Origin: Oikopleura dioica | Lineage: Eukaryota; Animalia; Chordata | Direction of reading: 5' to 3' | DNA: 64,000 nucleotides | NCBI GenBank assembly: GCA_907165135.1 | Contig: OU015567.1 | Location: forward strand, 620,001 to 684,000 | Shown here: piece by piece, positions 422 to 50,651 of the stretch | Layout: every line of letters begins with the position of its first letter | Position numbering within the stretch: position 1 is the stretch's first letter | Notes under the pieces: model-generated | What the model was told of the DNA's origin: nothing | The model's database searches: none | What the model saw: only the letters and a program-made list of their open reading frames with translations | Translations under genes and position numbers: made by a program

Positions 422-1786
422 AAATCTGAATCGAAAATTCAATAGCTTGAACCATTAAAAGATCGCCAGCTAACGCCGATATTCACCTGCGAAAAGCAAT
501 CCTCCAACAATATATAGAAATCCTGACGAGCAAGAGAATAACTGTCAGACACGAAAGAACAAGAGGCGGGGGCGAAGCACAAACTACTGAGATCTACTAC
601 AAGCCGACCAAGATGCCATTGACCAGGCAGAATTTCGCTCGAGGCGATCCAAAATTTGTTATTTATTTCATCCACTCTATTCTTCCGGGTTAATAATTTT
701 ATAGAAAAATGAGTTTTTGAATTTTATTAAGGAAACCCAAAAGATGCAAGCTCTTGTAGATTCTCTGATAGCCGATTGTATCAGTATCCAGTTAAAACGG
801 CGTTGTGTGGGGTTAAATCTGGCTGGAATCAGTTCATGTCCCTTTCTGAAGAAGACAGAATGATAATGGAATGCGTAAGGCTTTGTAAAGAAAAATAAAA
901 TAAAAGCTGATGCGATTTTAGACCGGCTGGAATCAAAATCAACTCTGGGCAGGAATGGCATCAGTTCAAACTTTACGTGAGTTCAAACCGCCAAAATCAA
1001 TTTTTTGTCAACAAATAAATCAAATAACTGAGTTTTAGTGGATCAAGATTACACTTCGGGACTTGCTTGCAAAATTATCTGCAGAACTATAATATTTTTG
1101 CTTCTCTGTAGAGTTCTGTTCTATTTAATCACTAAGAAATAAATTTTAATATAGAAAATTTTCTTGTATATTTCAGAAAATATCACATTTGCCATGAATT
1201 GTTTGGATGAAGAAATCTGAACAGAAAGAATCTTCAGTAGGACAGCGAAAGTTTTCAGTAAGGTTTTTGCTGTGAATCATTGATATAAAAGCATTAATAA
1301 AAATTTCAAGTTCGCACGCGAAATCCTTTGATAAATGTGTGCTATTTTCTCGGAGACTTTTGGTAAAAGTATGAAACTCAGCTGTCTCGAGAATTATGAA
1401 CTCAATTCTTATTGTGTCGAAAGAGGCACCGCTAATCTCGCCGGAAACAGGTTGCATCGGAATAATTCCTGCATAGGACTCATGGCTCCTGCATTTTCCC
1501 CTCCAGTACCAGTAGATGTCATCCTTTGTGGCAAGCTGCATTTCTGCAGCGCATTTCAATAGTGACGAATCGAAATCTTCATGCTCCGAACTCGCGGATT
1601 TTTGAAACTGTTTTCTCGCTCTGTCAAGAAACATTTTTCTTGTAAACCTTTGAATGATTGTTCAACACGAATTTCTCTATCTTTGGAAACTTACGCTCCA
1701 TTTGAAGTTTTGTTAACCACAGAAATATCTAAAATGTCGATTCTCTTGGTGTTGACATCTTGTTTTATAATTCTTTTCGTTTATTT

Positions 1787-1823
1787 GTTTGAGCTTTCGG
1801 AATTAAATTCCATCTTCAGAAAC
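1787..1823 (-). ncRNA. Minimal type-I hammerhead ribozyme (copy in inverted pLTR arm)
   Basis: Exact reverse complement of 2128-2164. Confidence 0.75.
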
Positions 1824-2127
1824 TAAGTACAGTTAACATAAAATACTCAGAAAAGTAAGCTTACCATGTGAGTGGCAAGAGAGAAATTTAGCGCACTGAA
1901 GTTTTGACAAGAAAATTAGAAGGAGAAGAGTGATATCTAGATTCATTTGATGGGCATGTATTTCACAACAATAACGCCCATCAAATCAATTTTTATTGTT
2001 GTGAAATTCTCTAGATATCACTCTTCTCCTTCTAATTTTCTTGTCAAAACTTCAGTGCGCTAAATTTCTCTCTTGCCACTCACATGGTAAGCTTACTTTT
2101 CTGAGTATTTTATGTTAACTGTACTTA

Positions 2128-2164
2128 GTTTCTGAAGATGGAATTTAATTCCGAAAGCTCAAAC
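2128..2164 (+). ncRNA. Minimal type-I hammerhead ribozyme in the PLE pLTR
   Basis: GUUU-CUGAAGA-U-GGAAU(UUA)AUUCC-GAAA-GC-UC|AAAC. Stem I GUUU/AAAC, stem II GGAAU/AUUCC, palindromic AGCU stem III; predicted cleavage after C2160. Minimal HHRs in PLE pLTRs are established. Confidence 0.8.
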
Positions 2165-2192
2165 AAATAAACGAAAAGAATTATAAAACAAG

Positions 2193-4652
2193 ATGTCAAC
2201 ACCAAGAGATATAAATATGGAACCACGACATCGCCAAGAATATAAAATAATCAGAAAAGTCCAGCGTTATAGAGAACACATCAATTTTCTACAAAATTGC
2301 TTGGATCATCAAGTCCACCCCCGATTCACTTTTTTCAAGCCGCAAGTTTTGAAGCAAGTAAAATGGAGTAAAGCTGAGGTATCGAAAAGAAGATCACAAA
2401 TAACACGTGAAACAATTCAAAAAAACAACGTAATTATTGACCAACTTAATTCTGAACTAGAATTATTTTCTAAAACTAAACTTTCAAATTTATCACCGCT
2501 TAACCTTCATCGTCACCTATCGCATTTACGAAATGTAGCCTTTCATTCTCTGAAATTTCATCGAGCTCAACTAGATAAAAAACTTAAATCTCTGATCGCA
2601 CAAAAATCCCCACCACCTTTCGAAATCAAAATTATCAATGATACATCTGTTACTTTACCACCTGAAATTATCGATATTTTGAAATTCGGAGGCTCACGTA
2701 GTATCGGGGGAACTCCTCATGCTGAGAAAATTGGCGAAAAGTATGATTATTTAGCTACTAAAATTTTTAAATATTGCAATGATAAGAAGTTCGATCCACT
2801 CTTAACAGATGAAATTTTGACTAATATTAAAGTCTCTTTTCATTCTCTTCGGAAAGCGTTCCCAAATAACAATGACGCTCAAACTCTCAAAAAGTTTTTG
2901 AAAGAGAATCCAAGCATTCTCATCCTTCCGATCGATAAATCTGACAATCTTAAAATTGTCACATGTGAACAATATGAACAAAAACTTTCAGAACAACTTT
3001 TATCCGATAAATTTATAAAAATCTCGGATGATTTTTTAGAACGAGATTATAAACGTCTAAATTGCATTCTTGAAGATTTGAAACCTTTTGTTACATCGAC
3101 CTGTTTCAACAAGATCAAGCCTAATTATAACAGTCGCACATGTTTTGGTCTCTCCAAGGAACACAAAACAAACAAACCTTTAAGACTTATCATTTCTGGC
3201 ACGAACAGCCTTACAAGCAATACAGAAAAATTTTTTTTAAAACCGATTCTTTCTAAAATGCTTGGATTTTGTAAATTCAGCATAAAAAGTACCGAAGAAA
3301 TAAAAAACAAAATCTTAAAAATTCGACCTTTTTTTGATAAAAATAAACATACAGTTTTTTCGCTTGACGTTGTGTCAATGTATGATAACGTCGATATCAA
3401 TCAAGCGATTGAATTTATTGTCAATAAAATTTACCAAAATCCAAAATTTTATTTTGAAGGTTTTATTGAAAAACCAGAGCATTTTCCATCAAAAAGCACA
3501 ATTTTCGCACTTCTTAGAGGTGCTCTTCGTGATTTTACTGGTTTTTCTAGCCGTGTCGGCAATTTTAAACAAAATAAGGGTGTCAATATGGGAGGTAGCA
3601 TTTCCCCAATTGTTGCTAGTTTTTGCAGTCTTATTGAGAATAATATTGTTAGCTCACTGACAAAATCAGGCGAGTGTTTACTTTTTGCGAGATTCGTTGA
3701 CGACTGCATAATCGTTTGTGAGAAAAAATCAAAACTAAAAATTTTCAGTAAGTTGAACTCAGTCAATAAAAATTTCCAGTTCAAAATTGAAAATATGAAA
3801 AATAACTCGATCAATTTTCTTGACTCGACAATTTTCATTAATAAAGACAACTCGCTTATTTCAATGAAACATTACAAAAAACCAACAAAAAGTAATGTTT
3901 TAACAAATTTCTCTAAGTCAATTTGCCCAAAATCCCATAAAAATAATTGCATAATTGGATCCGTAAAAAGAATCATGCACGCATCTTCAGATAAAATTTT
4001 TCAAGAACCTGCGATTGAAAAGCTTAAAAAGAAGCTTAAAGGAAATTCATACCCGTCAAAATTAATTAATTCGAAAATAGATTTAGCTTTAAAAAATGAG
4101 AAAAGAAAAGAACAAGAATATGACGAGGAAATTTATCTGTCTTTGGATTATACATCGCATCAGTGCAATCTCATCCAAAAACAATTACTAGAAACAATCA
4201 GAAAATTTTTGCCAAAATTCCGGCTTAAAATATCCTGGAAATCAATTCGAATCTCTAATTTAATAAATCCTCGCCTCAAACCTTCTCAAAATCGCGATAA
4301 TCCAACCGCCTGCATTTATAAATTTACTTGTCCTTGTAATAATGGAATATATATTGGTGAAACACTTCGACCTGTTGTTAACCGTCTGAGAGAGCACAAT
4401 TTTCGATCAAGTAACTCTGAAATTTCTACTCACATCTACAGCTGTGAAATTTATCAATCGAAATTGAAAACTGAAAACAAATACAATCTCACGCCAAAGA
4501 AGAAACTTGATTTTCTTCTTTCTCATACTTCCATTCTTAAATCAAATCTTTTCGACTGTCACAAACGAAAGTATACTGAAGCTTTTTTCATCAACATTTT
4601 ACTTCCTAATCTTAACAAACAAAACAACCACCGAAAAATAAAATTCATTTGA
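2193..4652 (+). CDS. PLE polyprotein, 819 aa: reverse transcriptase + GIY-YIG endonuclease
   Basis: IDKS (DKG-like motif), SLDVVSMY, GVNMGGSISP, ARFVDD, then CIYKFTCPC...IYIGET...RLREH...H. Uninterrupted ORF. Confidence 0.95.
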   Translation: MSTPRDINMEPRHRQEYKIIRKVQRYREHINFLQNCLDHQVHPRFTFFKPQVLKQVKWSKAEVSKRRSQITRETIQKNNVIIDQLNSELELFSKTKLSNLSPLNLHRHLSHLRNVAFHSLKFHRAQLDKKLKSLIAQKSPPPFEIKIINDTSVTLPPEIIDILKFGGSRSIGGTPHAEKIGEKYDYLATKIFKYCNDKKFDPLLTDEILTNIKVSFHSLRKAFPNNNDAQTLKKFLKENPSILILPIDKSDNLKIVTCEQYEQKLSEQLLSDKFIKISDDFLERDYKRLNCILEDLKPFVTSTCFNKIKPNYNSRTCFGLSKEHKTNKPLRLIISGTNSLTSNTEKFFLKPILSKMLGFCKFSIKSTEEIKNKILKIRPFFDKNKHTVFSLDVVSMYDNVDINQAIEFIVNKIYQNPKFYFEGFIEKPEHFPSKSTIFALLRGALRDFTGFSSRVGNFKQNKGVNMGGSISPIVASFCSLIENNIVSSLTKSGECLLFARFVDDCIIVCEKKSKLKIFSKLNSVNKNFQFKIENMKNNSINFLDSTIFINKDNSLISMKHYKKPTKSNVLTNFSKSICPKSHKNNCIIGSVKRIMHASSDKIFQEPAIEKLKKKLKGNSYPSKLINSKIDLALKNEKRKEQEYDEEIYLSLDYTSHQCNLIQKQLLETIRKFLPKFRLKISWKSIRISNLINPRLKPSQNRDNPTACIYKFTCPCNNGIYIGETLRPVVNRLREHNFRSSNSEISTHIYSCEIYQSKLKTENKYNLTPKKKLDFLLSHTSILKSNLFDCHKRKYTEAFFINILLPNLNKQNNHRKIKFI

Positions 4653-4829
4653 TGGGCATGTATTTCACAACAATAACGCCCATCAAATCAATTTTTATTG
4701 TTGTGAAATTCTCTAGATATCACTCTTCTCCTTCTAATTTTCTTGTCAAAACTTCAGTGCGCTAAATTTCTCTCTTGCCACTCACATGGTAAGCTTACTT
4801 TTCTGAGTATTTTATGTTAACTGTACTTA

Positions 4830-4866
4830 GTTTCTGAAGATGGAATTTAATTCCGAAAGCTGAAAC
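4830..4866 (+). ncRNA. Hammerhead copy in the 3' pLTR with a C17G change (predicted non-cleaving)
   Basis: GAAAGCTGAAAC here versus GAAAGCTCAAAC in the other two copies. Confidence 0.65.
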
Positions 4867-6739
4867 AAATAAACGAAAAGAAAATGTCGATTGTGAAGAA
4901 ATCTTCAATATTTTCGTTGCTAATTGTTAATTGGTCCTTTCTCTTCATCACATCGAGTTCGGAATAAAAAAGAAGCTGTTTGAGGATAAAATTGATTATG
5001 ATTAAAAATTGTTAATTAAGATTATTATTTTCAACTCTCTCCCTGATTAAGTGAGTCATATTTGTAATACCGCCTTTCGCACATGTTTAAGCAAACTGAA
5101 TTCAAGGAGCATTAAAGGCAGTAGCTAATACTGTCTCTTACATGCAGTACCATTCAACAAATTCTTCAGTGTCAATCTATCTTCAGTGCCGTTGACGAAA
5201 TAGTTTCCAAGATTCATCGTGGCAGTCGAGTTGAGAATCGCAATATCAGTCAAAATTGACGAGTCCATATCTTCAACTTCTCTCTGATCGTCCAAAAACT
5301 TTTAAGCAGCATCGACATTTCGCTGCAGATGAAAAACAATTCCCAAAACGCATGCAACAAGCGCGCTGATGAAAATGTTTCCGAAAGAAATAAATTTTCC
5401 AATAAACAACAAAAAAATCAACATTTTCCTGAAAAGAAAGATCGCTAGAAAAACGTTTTTATACTCCCGGACTTTCATCTTTTTGAATAAAGAAAGTTGA
5501 GTTCTATCTTCTATCTTGTAGCGCAGCTTCAATGAACCTGTTTTATCAACCGTGAAATAATTAAAATCGATTTTGGTAAATAATTTTCAGTTTTTCGTGT
5601 TTTCGAGTCGAAAATATGCTTCGTATTTTTTTCTGATTGTAGGGTGACGTCTTCATATAAGATTCAAGAGCCGCTTGGGGTTTATCAATAAATATTTATC
5701 GCAGCGCTGGAGAGGTAGAATGATAAAGTTTTAAGTTGGCGAGGGGGAGTGCGCGTCTTCCGCATTTCGTAACTCCGAAACCGCTCACGTTTCCTTCTTT
5801 AGCTACGTCTTCGCCCTTTCGATCTGTCGAAATTGCTACTTTTCGAAAGAAAGCACGTTGGAATAAAATCTGTGTAAAAAGAAAAGCTCTGGAATCGTTA
5901 TTTTCTTACCGAAAGCAGCGGAGGAAATCGAACAGGGTATTCAATACCACCAAAGACTAATATTGAGCTCATCACTTCCTGACGCCGCTCCAACCTTTTG
6001 TCACCGCCTCAACTTTCAGAAAATATTAAACTGACAATATTCTTAAAAATTATTTATGGCTGACAAAACACGCTCATTCAAGCATAGCTTAAGTTGGAAC
6101 AAATCTATATAAACAAATTTAAATGATGATTTTTATAAAAATGAAGATTCGGGAGTATAAGGCTGTTTTTCTTGCGATTTTTGCCGTCAGGAAAATGTCT
6201 TAGTTGTTCATTGAAAAAAAGAGGAAAGAGATTGTTTCCCGAACATTTGAATCAGTGTACTTTTTGCATGCATCTTGGGCATTGTTTTTCATCTAAAGCG
6301 AATGAATGACGATGCTGCTGGAAAATTGTTGGATGAGAAAGCCTCTGAAAAAGGGCAACTAGTTGAAGATGTGGACTCATTTGCTTCGACTGACGTTCCG
6401 ATTCTTAACGCGACAATGAGGATGAATCTTGGAGATTTCTTCGTCAACGGCAGCGAAGACAGACTGACGATTGAGAGTTTGTTGGATGAGACTCCATGTA
6501 AGGACTTAAAATAGAAATTTCTCAAAGGCTCTGATTAAGTTTGCTTATTCATTTGCGGGGTAGATCATTTTCGGTTCACCTCTCTTTATCAGGAACAGTA
6601 TTCAAAATGATTTATATCTATAAATATTGATAAAATGCGCTCAAAGTATATCTTAAAAAACATCAGCGGTATCCATATTGGCTTTTCATCAAATGATGAT
6701 TTCGAATCAAGAATCGAAGATTTCTTCAAAATCGACATT

Positions 6740-6822
6740 GTTTCTTTTCGTTCATATTTACTTAAGTATCCTGATGAAGTTTATCCAATAAACGAAAACG
6801 TTTGATACAAATCATATGATCT
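6740..6822 (+). mobile_element. 83-bp hammerhead-containing mini-insertion with 9-bp TSD (probable truncated PLE of a second family)
   Basis: ATCGACATT at 6731-6739 and 6823-6831; absent from the paralogous copies near 24121 and 49651. Confidence 0.8.
6766..6808 (+). ncRNA. Minimal type-I hammerhead ribozyme
   Basis: GUAUC-CUGAUGA-A-GUUUAU(CCA)AUAAAC-GAAA-ACGU-UU|GAUAC. Stem I 5 bp, stem II 6 bp, palindromic AACGUU stem III. Confidence 0.8.
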
Positions 6823-7725
6823 ATCGACATTTATGATATTTCAGTCGTAGATAAAACTTCGCATGGGTCGTAAGTTTCAGCTAAAGATTTTGTCAAATCA
6901 TTATGAAATTTTTAAGGTTTTCACGAAAAATGATTTTTGACGCAGCAAAAGAAGAGTTTGAACAATCTCGACTTTCTGAGCACGAAGACTTTGATTCCTC
7001 CGTATACAAATGCGCAGCAGAATTGATTACTTCTCCTGGTGGTATTACCTGGTCGAAACAAAATTTAAACAAGTGCGGACATTTTCCTCGACTACCTTAT
7101 CAGGGCGAGATAAAAAATGCCTCCTTCGACACAGTTGAAATTCAGTATTCAATCGCCGAAAAAGCTGACTTTCACAATTTTACTCGGAGTCTCAAAGAAA
7201 ACGAAACTGTTTTGTCGCGGGATCTCGCATGCGATCTGTACTTTTTTAATGTCGGCTTAATATCGTTGATTCATGCCGAAAACCTTGCTGAAAATTTCAC
7301 CTGTCCCAGCGAAGACTCCTTCTGTTCAGATTTTTTCATTCAAACAATACATGATGAATGTATTGTAACGTGATGAATGTTGGTAACGAAAATAAACCGA
7401 ACAAGAAGCCGTGAATAAAATAAGTAAAAACTGAGATTTTTGTGCGTTTTCAAGTAATTTTGGCACCTTGGCCGGAATAAGAGCGTCTCACGGTGCTGAA
7501 ATGATATATCGCTGGTCGAATTTCAGAAGCTCTAATCCGCCAGCACCAGATCGTTACACGCAATTTCGCCTCACATGTGGAGCCGCCACGATAACGATTA
7601 CCATAGTAAGCTGAGAATGTTTCTCTCTCTAGAGAAAATCACTGGGTTAGAGGGTTTCTAGGGCACGTTTGTTTTTATTGATAATTTCTTGATTTTTTGA
7701 GAATTTATCTTTCTCAAAAACTTTT

Positions 7726-23794: not shown

Positions 23795-24406
23795 TTAACG
23801 CGACAATGAGGATGAATCTTGGAGATTTCTTCGTCAACGGCAGCGAAGACAGACTGACGATTGAGAGTTTGTTGGATGAGACTCCATGTAAGGACTTAAA
23901 ATAGAAATTTCTGAAAGGCTCTGATTTAGTTTGTTTATTCATTTGCGGGGTAGATCATTTTCGGTTCGATTCTCTTTATCAGGAACAGTATTCAAAATGA
24001 TTTATATCTATAAATATTGATAAAATGCGCTCAAAGTATATCTTAAAAAACATCTGCGGTATCAATCTCGGCTTTTCATCAAATGATGATTTCGAATCAA
24101 GAATCGAAGATTTCTTCAAAATCGACATTTATGATATTTCAGTCGTAGATAGAACTTCGCATGGGTCGTAAGTTTCAGCTAAAGATTTTGTCAAATCATT
24201 GTATGAAATTTTTAAGGTTTTCACGAAAAATGATTTTTGACGCAGCAAAAGAAGAATTTGAAAAATCTCGACTTTCTGAGCATGAAGATTTTGATTCCTC
24301 CGTATACAAATGCGCGGCAGAGATGTTTACTTCTCCTGGTGGTATTACCTGGTCAAAACAAAATTTAAACAAGTGCGGACATTTTCCTCGATTACCTTAT
24401 CAGGGC

Positions 24407-24905
24407 CAGAATTGCAAATTTGCTGAGCTGAGTGAGCTGAGCTGGCTGAGTGAGCTGAGCAGTCGCTCAGTTCAGCTCAGCTCACTGATTTTCGAAATGA
24501 ATTTATCTGCTCAGCTCAGCTCAGACAATAATCACTCAGCTCAGCTCAATTATTCTCGAACATGATCTGTTCTGCTCAGCTCAGACAAGTATCATTCAGC
24601 TCAGCTCAGCTCAGGTCAATGATTTTAACACAATTTCACTACTAGAAAACAGTAAAAATTGGCTCAAATCAGCTCACTCAGCTCAGCTCAGCTCTAATTA
24701 GGGTCTGCTCAGCTCAGCTCAACTACCTTAAAAAAGGTCTGCTCAGCTAAGCTCAGCTCAATGACCTCTGAAGATGGCCAGCTCAGCTCAGCTCAGCTCA
24801 GTGAGCTCCGAAATAGGCCAGCTCAGCTCAGCTCAGCTCAGAGAATTTCTCACTCAGGGCAGCTCAGCTCAGCTCAGCAAAAATAAAGCCAAATTTGCAA
24901 CTCTG
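24407..24905. mobile_element. hAT-like MITE filled with AGCTC pentamers
   Basis: 8-bp TSD ATCAGGGC; TIR CAGA(A/G)TTGCAAATTTG; empty site in copy A near 7100. Confidence 0.9.
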
Positions 24906-49061: not shown

Positions 49062-50651
49062 ATGAATATTCGGGAGTATAAGGCTGTTTTTCTTGCGATT
49101 TTTGCCATCAGGAAAATGTCTTAGTTGTTCATTGAAAGAAAAGGAGAGAGATTGTTTCCCGAACATTTGAATCAGTGTACTTTTTGCGTGCATCTTGGGC
49201 ATTGTTTTTCATCTAAAGCGAATGAATGACGATGCTGCTGGAAAATTGTTGGATGAGAGAGCCTCTGAAAAAGGGCAACTAGTTGAAGATGTGGACTCAT
49301 TTGCTTCGACTGAGGTTCCGATTCTTAACGCGACAATGAGGATGAATCTTGGAGATTTCTTCGTCAACGGCAGCGAAGACAGACTGACGATTGAGAGTTT
49401 GTTGGATGAGTCAGCATGTAAGGACTTAAAATAGAAATTTCTGAAAGGCTGTGATTTAGTTTGTTTATTCATTTGCGGGGTAGATCATTTTCGGTTCGAT
49501 TCTCTTTATCAGGAACAGTATTCAAAATGCTGAATATCTGTGAATACTCATAAAATGCTCAAAAAGTATATCTTCAAAAACATCAGCGGTATCAATCTTG
49601 GCTTTTCATCAAATGATGATTTCGAGTCAAGAATCGAAGATTTCTTCAAAATCGACATTTATGATATTTCAGTCGTAGATAAAACTTCGCATGGGTCGTA
49701 AGTTTCAGCTAAAGATTTTGTCAAATCATTGTATGAAATTTTTAAGGTTTTCAAGAAAAATGATTTTTGACGCAGCAAAAGAAGAATTTGAAAAATCTCG
49801 ACTTTCTGAGCATGAAGATTTTGATTCCTCCGTATACAAATGCGCGGCAGAGATGTTTACTTCTCCTGGTGGTATAACCTGGTCAAAACAAAATTTAAAC
49901 AAGTGCGGACATTTTCCTCGATTACCTTATCAGGGCCAGAATTGCAAATTTGCTGAGCTGAGTGAGCTGAGCAGTCGCTCAGTTCAGCTCAGCTCACTGA
50001 TTTTCGAAATGAATTTATCTGCTCAGCTCAGCTCAGACAATAATCACTCAGCTCAGCTCAATTATTCTCGAACATGATCTGTTCTGCTCAGCTCAGACAA
50101 GTATCATTCAGCTCAGCTCAGCTCAGCTCAATGATTTTAACACAATTTCACTTCTAAAAAACATTAAAAAACAGCTCAACCCAGCTCACTCAGCTCAGCT
50201 CAGCTCTAATTAGGGTCTGCTCAGCTCAGCTCAACTACCTTAAAAAAGGTCTGCTCAGCTCAGCTCAGCTCAATGACCTCTGAAGATGGCCAGCTTAGCT
50301 CAGCTCAGCTCAGTGAGCTCCGAAATAGGCCAGCTCAGCTCAGGTCAGCAAAAATAAAGCCAAATTTGCAACTCTGATCAGGGCGAGATAAAAAATGCCT
50401 CCTTCGACACGATTGAAATTCAGTATTCAATCGCCGAAAAAGCTGATTTTCACAATTTTACTCGGAGTCTCAAAGAAAACGAAACTGTTTTATTGCGGGA
50501 TCTCGCATGCGATCTGTACTTTTTTAATGACGGCTTAATATCGATGATTCATGCCGAAAACCTTGCTGAAAATTTCACCTGTCCCAGCGAAGACTCCTTC
50601 TGTTCAGATTTTTTCATTCAAACAATACATGATGAATGTATTGTTACGTGA
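49062..50651 (+). pseudogene. Family-X plus member, copy C, disrupted by the AGCTC hAT-like MITE
   Basis: Same insertion and TSD as copy B. Confidence 0.75.
49937..50376. mobile_element. hAT-like AGCTC MITE (same insertion event as 24407, shorter array)
   Basis: TSD ATCAGGGC at 49929-36 and 50377-84. Confidence 0.9.

Follow-up and report, generated by a model that had tools for sequence, protein, structure and literature searches.

An 83-bp insert in the first exon of a small gene of the chordate Oikopleura dioica is, with a probability that we put at about 0.9, an abortive, 5'-truncated, dead-on-arrival copy of a Penelope-like element (PLE) of a family that we denote B. The gene belongs to a stretch of 64,000 nucleotides (the window: contig OU015567.1, positions 620,001 to 684,000, here G000:C5:620001-684000), which few long open reading frames (ORFs) and short GTAAGT...AG introns mark as eukaryotic, and the genome searched comprised 64,281,565 bases in 19 contigs. 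A second PLE, of 3.1 kb and called PLE-A below, sits at the homologous site of the neighbouring paralog of the same gene.

The 83 bp of unique sequence are flanked on either side by the same 9 bp, ATCGACATT, and the type-1 paralogs of the host gene at 24120 and 49650 read uninterrupted through AATCGACATT into TATGATATTTCAG (AATCGACATT into TATGAT); because these sites are empty, the 92 extra bases are accounted for as an insertion together with its target-site duplication. An earlier note on this DNA had called for a genome-wide search for relatives of the insert, and at least 38 were found (at least 39 family-B matches with the insert itself counted). The insert is 99% identical to, and collinear with, the arms of a full B copy at C3:450447-453610, a 3.2-kb element with a reverse transcriptase (RT)/GIY-YIG protein in two ORF pieces. 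These pieces contain the YVDD and GIY-YIG motifs and are in turn collinear with the PLE-A protein, at 33% identity over 454 aa and 28% over 392 aa, which bears out the view of the earlier note that the insert came from a different PLE lineage than the 3.1-kb element. All comparisons of boundaries are based on the flanks of 29 family-B copies read besides the insert in the window: every one of the 29 continues upstream into the same ~50 or more bases of the pseudo-long terminal repeat (pLTR), and the 5' boundary of the insert (6740) was found in none of them. That boundary falls 15 nt inside the intron of the B pLTR, a 42-nt GT...AG segment that several genomic copies (L051, L052) lack exactly; the template RNA was therefore unspliced. 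The other boundary is the canonical 3' end of the family, which is the same base, give or take A, AT or ATT, in 11 independent B insertions (...ATGATCT), and the 9-bp duplication is within the range of 9-13 bp seen in the 11 B pairs. The insert thus displays collinearity with the pLTR of an element encoding RT and a GIY-YIG endonuclease, a canonical 3' terminus and a target-site duplication, as a 5'-truncated PLE copy should.

The behaviour of family B elsewhere in the genome fits this interpretation. Its copies are outward-facing inverted pairs, 0.3-3.2 kb apart, in each of which one arm ends with ...CATATGATCT and the other is 28 nt longer (ATTAACGAAGTCAAC...AAGATATA), and its insertions form a size series of 83 bp, ~86 bp, ~200-260 bp, 0.5-1.1 kb, 1.9-2.4 kb and ~3.2 kb (3160 bp). 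Since the internal junctions differ from copy to copy, these are independent truncations and not copies of one short element; the ~86-bp member (L050, in the region of C3:1956877-1956931), for instance, has an inverted tail arm of 30 nt and a direct arm of 56 nt, joined to each other between the copies of a 12-bp duplication, GAACACGCTAAT. At the level of families, pLTRs, an inverted 5' arm and a tail at one end are found in all of A, B, C and D, the tail being 28 nt long in A and B and 19-25 nt in C and D, and frequent 5' truncation, inverted 5' copies and a one-sided tail of 30-40 bp are established hallmarks of PLEs (PMC8557442). The pLTR introns of A and B are 42-44 nt GT..AG segments that end at the base of hammerhead helix I (2087-2128, L042, L051-L053). 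In both families intron-bearing genomic copies coexist with intron-less ones (the 42-nt segment of PLE-A is precisely missing from the copy at C5:6845146, L042), which implies that spliced and unspliced RNAs are both reverse-transcribed.

The insert holds a complete minimal hammerhead of the type that requires dimer formation, as the earlier note had recognised. In the parsed motif, helix I pairs GUAUC (6766-6770) with GAUAC (6804-6808), the core CUGAUGA (6771-6777) is followed by a single unpaired A (6778), helix II (GUUUAU/AUAAAC, 6779-6793) leads into GAAA (6794-6797), and the palindrome AACGUU (6797-6802) replaces a closed helix III; with U at position 17, cleavage is predicted between U6803 and G6804, 19 nt before the end of the insert. 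Each defining feature of a minimal hammerhead ribozyme (min-HHR) is present, namely CUGANGA...GAAA, H at position 17, a helix I that is 4-5 bp long, a base left unpaired ahead of helix II and a palindrome where helix III would be. Minimal, dimer-dependent hammerheads with an unpaired base before helix II have been described in the pLTRs of metazoan PLEs, where they cleave poorly in vitro, and single min-HHRs have been considered "probably related to truncated PLEs" (PMC4209133). Four further PLE lineages of the genome (A, A2, C and D) have hammerheads built in this way, with other helix sequences that keep their complementarity: GUUU/AAAC, UAGUA/UACUG or UGA/UCA in helix I, GGAAU/AUUCC, GGAC/GUCC, GGAU/AUCC or GGAG/CUCC in helix II, and AGCU or AGAUCU as the palindrome. 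All three helices show covariation across A, A2, B, C and D. The minimum-energy structure predicted for the monomer retains helices I and II, at -8 to -10 kcal/mol. The Rfam covariance models for hammerhead types I, II, III, HH9 and HH10 gave no match at the gathering threshold or at E up to 10, as is to be expected of a motif that has no closed helix III.

From the predicted cleavage site to the direct 3' end there are 20 nt in family A, 19 nt in B, 23 nt in C and 26 nt in D, and in all four the inverted arms extend 19-28 nt beyond the direct ends. The 3'-end geometry that the earlier note described as common to the two insertions is therefore real but is a class property of PLEs. Two-armed insertions have exactly one tail each, located on the inverted arm wherever the orientation is known, with the direct 3' end being the short one. 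The shape of the hammerhead, the 19-20-nt offset, the 28-nt tail and nicking at ATT all match published PLE biology.

So how could such a fragment have come about? In the scenario that follows, we infer which strand was nicked first, which enzyme acted and that synthesis aborted. A particle containing the B RT/GIY-YIG protein would first have made a nick in the gene's antisense strand, within AATGTCGAT/T, and the resulting 3'-OH would have primed reverse transcription of an unspliced B transcript at the normal internal start of the family, 19 nt downstream of the hammerhead cleavage site. Synthesis would have copied 83 nt, through the hammerhead and 27 nt of the pLTR intron, and then stopped; the cDNA would have been joined to a second nick, in the sense strand after ACATT, and fill-in would have yielded the 9-bp duplication. 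Priming through microhomology at the target was also considered and was rejected because the sole pairing found (GAUGUC) predicts an end that is not observed. Similarly, the likeness between the target and the PLE tail (ATGTC.A, also found at the ORF start) covers 9 of 18 positions, has no counterpart at other B targets and is treated as chance. The product of the insertion is immobile and leaves a single weak, dimer-dependent hammerhead in sense orientation in exon 1. The reading frame that runs through the interrupted exon meets TGA at 6803-6805, 22 codons on, and the insert disables one copy of a small, lineage-specific gene family. Two candidate introns that could be spliced out of the host mRNA, from the GT at 6740 to the AG at 6844 (105 nt) and the 27 nt 6740-6766, were discarded, both leaving a frameshift.

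Why, then, did two PLEs strike the same place? Both insertions lie in the FF(K/T)IDI codons of paralogous genes, at the homologous 10-mer, and on this point the earlier note was correct. The 10-mer AATCGACATT occurs 7 times in the window, where 0.35 occurrences are expected, because it is conserved in all six paralogs of the host family; these are all in the window, and searches with exon-wise references, the exons being taken separately, revealed no other location in the genome. Only the first of the three gene units in the window was hit, in both its genes and at points 1.84 kb apart; the sense-strand nick is identical in the two genes (after ACATT), and the other nick agrees within 1-3 nt. 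The same-site hit in two of six paralogs is real but unexplained, and two events cannot fix its cause.

A shared preference for AAT-N4-ATT had been proposed in the earlier note, which itself named a lack of enrichment among other insertions as grounds for abandoning the idea, and this is the outcome that our sample of target sites gives (18 other insertions, among them 11 paired B insertions, 3 further B insertions, the second A insertion and one each of C and D). In element orientation the 11 paired B duplications start with AAT (3), ATT (2), AAA (2), TTT (2), GAT or TTA, a T follows the duplication in 9 of the 11, and only AATTTGATT comes near the proposed motif (AAT-N3-ATT). AAT-N4-ATT is absent from the three further B duplications (GAACACGCTAAT, CTTCTAAC and GAATATGAGATAT), from the second A duplication, ATTTT[A/G]AAAAT, and from those of families C and D (GGATTTAATTTT and GGAATAATATT); its frequency is 102 per 64 kb. 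What can be seen is a weak A/T-rich (AAT/ATT/AAA/TTT) preference at the priming nick, in agreement with the published preference for ATT (PMC11167929). The duplications are all different and have only the A/T-rich start in common, which sets these families apart from site-specific, R2-like retroelements.

The explanation that we favour, at slightly better than even odds, is a true hot spot, that is, a preference of both PLE lineages, the enzymes of which are ~30% identical, for the 10-mer and its context. The cue could be the pair of ATTs, one per strand and spaced by 10 bp, the local shape of the DNA, or chromatin that is open just inside two divergent genes. Two of only six existing copies were hit at the same sense-strand phosphodiester, and a second hit at one of the five paralogous sites has a chance of ~7e-5 if insertion is uniform and of ~1.5e-2 if only AAT-N4-ATT sites (~1e5 in the genome) are used, both values assuming ~300 PLE insertions genome-wide, which is a guess. 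Furthermore, cleavage at ATT on both strands has been published for a Poseidon PLE (PMC11167929), and both PLE-A duplications are near-palindromic. Against a hot spot, the other insertions in the sample show nothing beyond the A/T-rich start and the T after the duplication, no paralog has an insertion at the further AAT-N4-ATT that this exon contains 38 bp upstream, and the sample amounts to two events. The more specific proposition that AATCGACATT with its context, ~100 bp inside the genes, is a genuine hot spot recognised by two PLE lineages with ~30% identical enzymes is offered tentatively, with the odds somewhat against it. If it is true, recognition by the GIY-YIG endonucleases of PLEs would extend beyond ATT, perhaps to a symmetric ATT/ATT arrangement with a 10-bp spacing that fits a dimer of the enzyme, and the site could become a natural substrate for dissecting PLE target choice.

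Coincidence, noticed only through the scanning of many windows, appears unlikely, if still a serious contender: PLE target choice in this genome is loose, the first-stage scan was large, and the region lies 0.6 Mb from the chromosome end, with further PLE RT matches at C5:244703 and C5:535054, but the estimated probability is 1e-4 to 1e-2 per genome on the same guessed insertion count, and the sense-strand nick is identical to the base. Clearly less probable still is a single episode in which both paralogous sites were cut by the PLE-A endonuclease and repair of the second break took in a short B cDNA. The proximity of the two sites, the youth of both insertions (perfect duplications, one mismatch each to relatives) and the restriction of palindromic duplications to PLE-A are compatible with such an episode, whereas the insert ends exactly at B's own RT start with a duplication of normal size, as target-primed synthesis by B predicts, and there is no link in time between the two events.

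Several observations weigh against the identification of the insert as a truncated B copy. The randomness of its 5' end cannot be shown; the reverse complement of that end matches the 3' end of PLE-A over 11 nt; among full-length B copies, the one closest to the insert carries a broken ORF and does not reveal the active source; and the weak target preference of the other insertions leaves the same-site coincidence unaccounted for. We attribute the 11-nt match to the pyrimidine tract of the 42-nt pLTR intron, which is present in the intron-bearing B arms, and the start that the earlier note took for an inverted AACGAAAAGAA-like end is the same tract and not a terminal structure. The proposal, likewise made in that note, that the 83 bp form a ribozyme retro-unit complete in itself (a mini-retrozyme), which a PLE enzyme moves in trans, would suit a sequence that comprises a whole hammerhead and little else, and non-autonomous hammerhead elements from PLE pLTRs have been proposed in vertebrates (bioRxiv 10.64898/2026.07.22.740005), but it is very improbable and, on the evidence of the aligned copies, largely refuted, given an insert that begins in mid-intron, is collinear with the arm of a full PLE and has a 5' boundary unmatched in the other copies read, and given that there are no tandem copies in the window, where the insert is single, or among the genomic matches, which are inverted pairs or single arms. 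A truncated PLE copy thus remains the preferred interpretation.

Several known systems can be compared with the insert. In truncated endonuclease-bearing (EN+) PLEs with min-HHRs (Cervera & De la Pena 2014, PMC4209133; Craig et al. 2021, PMC8557442), as in the insert, helix I measures 4-5 bp, loop 1 is missing, one base is left unpaired ahead of helix II, and helix III is not closed; in those elements, too, the motifs are mostly single or in inverted pairs 100-700 bp apart and derive from truncated PLEs (PMC4209133). 5' truncation is likewise frequent in them, an inverted 5' arm occurs together with a tail of 30-40 bp (PMC8557442), and they share the intron in the pLTR. In contrast, the insert, at 83 bp, barely exceeds the 80 nt from which Craig et al. 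begin to count 3' ends, lacks an inverted arm and lies in sense orientation in a coding exon. The Poseidon PLE of Anolis carolinensis, as studied in vitro, similarly cuts and extends both strands, favours 5'-ATT-3' on each of them, uses two adjacent internal RT starts with a spacing equal to the tail, and can dispense with the hammerhead for insertion (PMC11167929). The differences are that the Poseidon starts lie 111-118 nt into the ORF, whereas those of A and B come 19-20 and 47-48 nt after the cleavage site and no later than the ORF start, those of C (~23/48 nt) and D (~26/45 nt) being further out, and that no strand difference was seen in vitro (PMC11167929), whereas here the tail is always on the inverted arm where the orientation is known. 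Non-long-terminal-repeat (animal) retrozymes are also short hammerhead sequences that are thought to derive from PLE pLTRs; however, they form head-to-tail tandem units and circular RNAs, whereas the insert occurs singly, without a tandem partner, its pair of boundaries is repeated in none of the other copies read, and it does not belong to that class. Finally, there is a resemblance to dead-on-arrival, 5'-truncated long interspersed nuclear elements (LINEs), in which target-primed synthesis aborts early and a duplication surrounds a 3'-end fragment, and to LINE twin priming, in which priming from both nicks gives inverted arms; in contrast to LINEs, PLE initiation is internal to the RNA and not at a poly(A) end, and the endonuclease is of the GIY-YIG type.

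Taken alone, the insert is an ordinary dead retroelement fragment. The locus as a whole provides clean natural examples of the PLE geometry established in vitro (two starts, a tail on one arm, cuts in both strands), as well as one concrete candidate hot spot for studying PLE endonuclease specificity. It also draws attention to diverse, apparently recent PLEs in a genome that appears to match an assembly whose paper called PLEs almost absent and left 44% of repeats unclassified (PMC8008620); the PLE families themselves appear to be undescribed for this Oikopleura assembly.

PLE-A as a whole occupies 1743-4882, with the 10-bp duplication AATGTCGATT on both sides (see the table for its parts). 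Its hammerhead differs from that of the insert in having CUGAAGA and AGCU. Relatives of its protein in public data, identified by a word-based protein search, carry RVT_1 (PF00078) and GIY-YIG (PF01541); Pfam applied to the PLE-A protein itself did not recognise the RT and gave only a sub-threshold GIY-YIG match (E 0.0017). The 3' pLTR hammerhead has G at cleavage position 17 (GCUG, base 4862), where the 5' pLTR and the inverted arm have C, and this G should inactivate the 3' pLTR copy of the ribozyme. Genome-wide, the PLE RT-EN protein has at least 55 scored matches (116 candidates) that fall into many families at 25-40% identity. Several of these have intact ORFs of ~840 aa, and many are on the 2.9-Mb contig C3; example loci are C5:15852101-15854569, C4:4738246-4740708, C4:12376928-12379396 and C4:8246846-8249272.

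Table. Coordinates, in the window, of PLE-A, of the interrupted host gene and of the parts of the 83-bp insert
Feature	Positions	Strand	Remarks
Left target-site duplication of PLE-A	1733..1742	+	AATGTCGATT, reverse complement of AATCGACATT
Inverted, 5'-truncated arm of PLE-A	1743..1943	-	outer 28 nt (1743-1770) are the tail running into the ORF start
PLE-A direct unit	1945..4882	+	
PLE-A 5' pLTR	1945-2180	+	intron 2087-2128, hammerhead 2128-2164
PLE-A ORF	2193-4652	+	819 aa, RT and C-terminal GIY-YIG
PLE-A 3' pLTR	4647-4882	+	G at position 17 of its hammerhead (base 4862)
Right target-site duplication of PLE-A	4883..4892	+	FFTIDI codons of the minus-strand type-2 paralog
Host gene exon 1 (type-1 paralog), interrupted by the insert	6635..6869	+	by comparison with the uninterrupted paralog; ATG 6635, GTAAGT donor 6870
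Left copy of the 9-bp target-site duplication	6731..6739	+	ATCGACATT; covers the I-D-I codons of exon 1, type-1 paralog
Probable 5'-truncated 3' end of a family-B PLE (pLTR tip), 83 bp	6740..6822	+	sense to the host gene
Last 27 nt of the 42-nt family-B pLTR intron	6740..6766	+	pyrimidine tract and AG; GTATTC...TTTAG precisely absent in L051, L052
Minimal hammerhead motif	6766..6808	+	parsed from the letters; architecture as in PMC4209133
Rest of the 19-nt stretch from cleavage site to family-B 3' terminus	6809..6822	+	...CATATGATCT; canonical first reverse-transcription start
Right copy of the target-site duplication	6823..6831	+	
Host gene exon 2	6917..7373	+	follows the 47-nt intron 6870-6916

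The host genes lie in three tandem units of ~17 kb within positions 1-55000 of the window, each with a divergent pair of paralogs that encode a small cysteine-containing protein, the type-1 and type-2 paralogs being ~54% identical. The protein has no recognisable family, and a search of the ESM Atlas gave only weak leads to the PAN domain (0.87). Exon 2 of the second and third type-1 paralogs is broken by a ~450-bp GCTCA-rich dispersed repeat (~24420-24840 and ~49940-50380), for which there are 330 candidate copies genome-wide. With this repeat in copies 2 and 3 and the PLE tip in copy 1, all three type-1 copies are therefore disrupted in the assembly, each by a mobile element.

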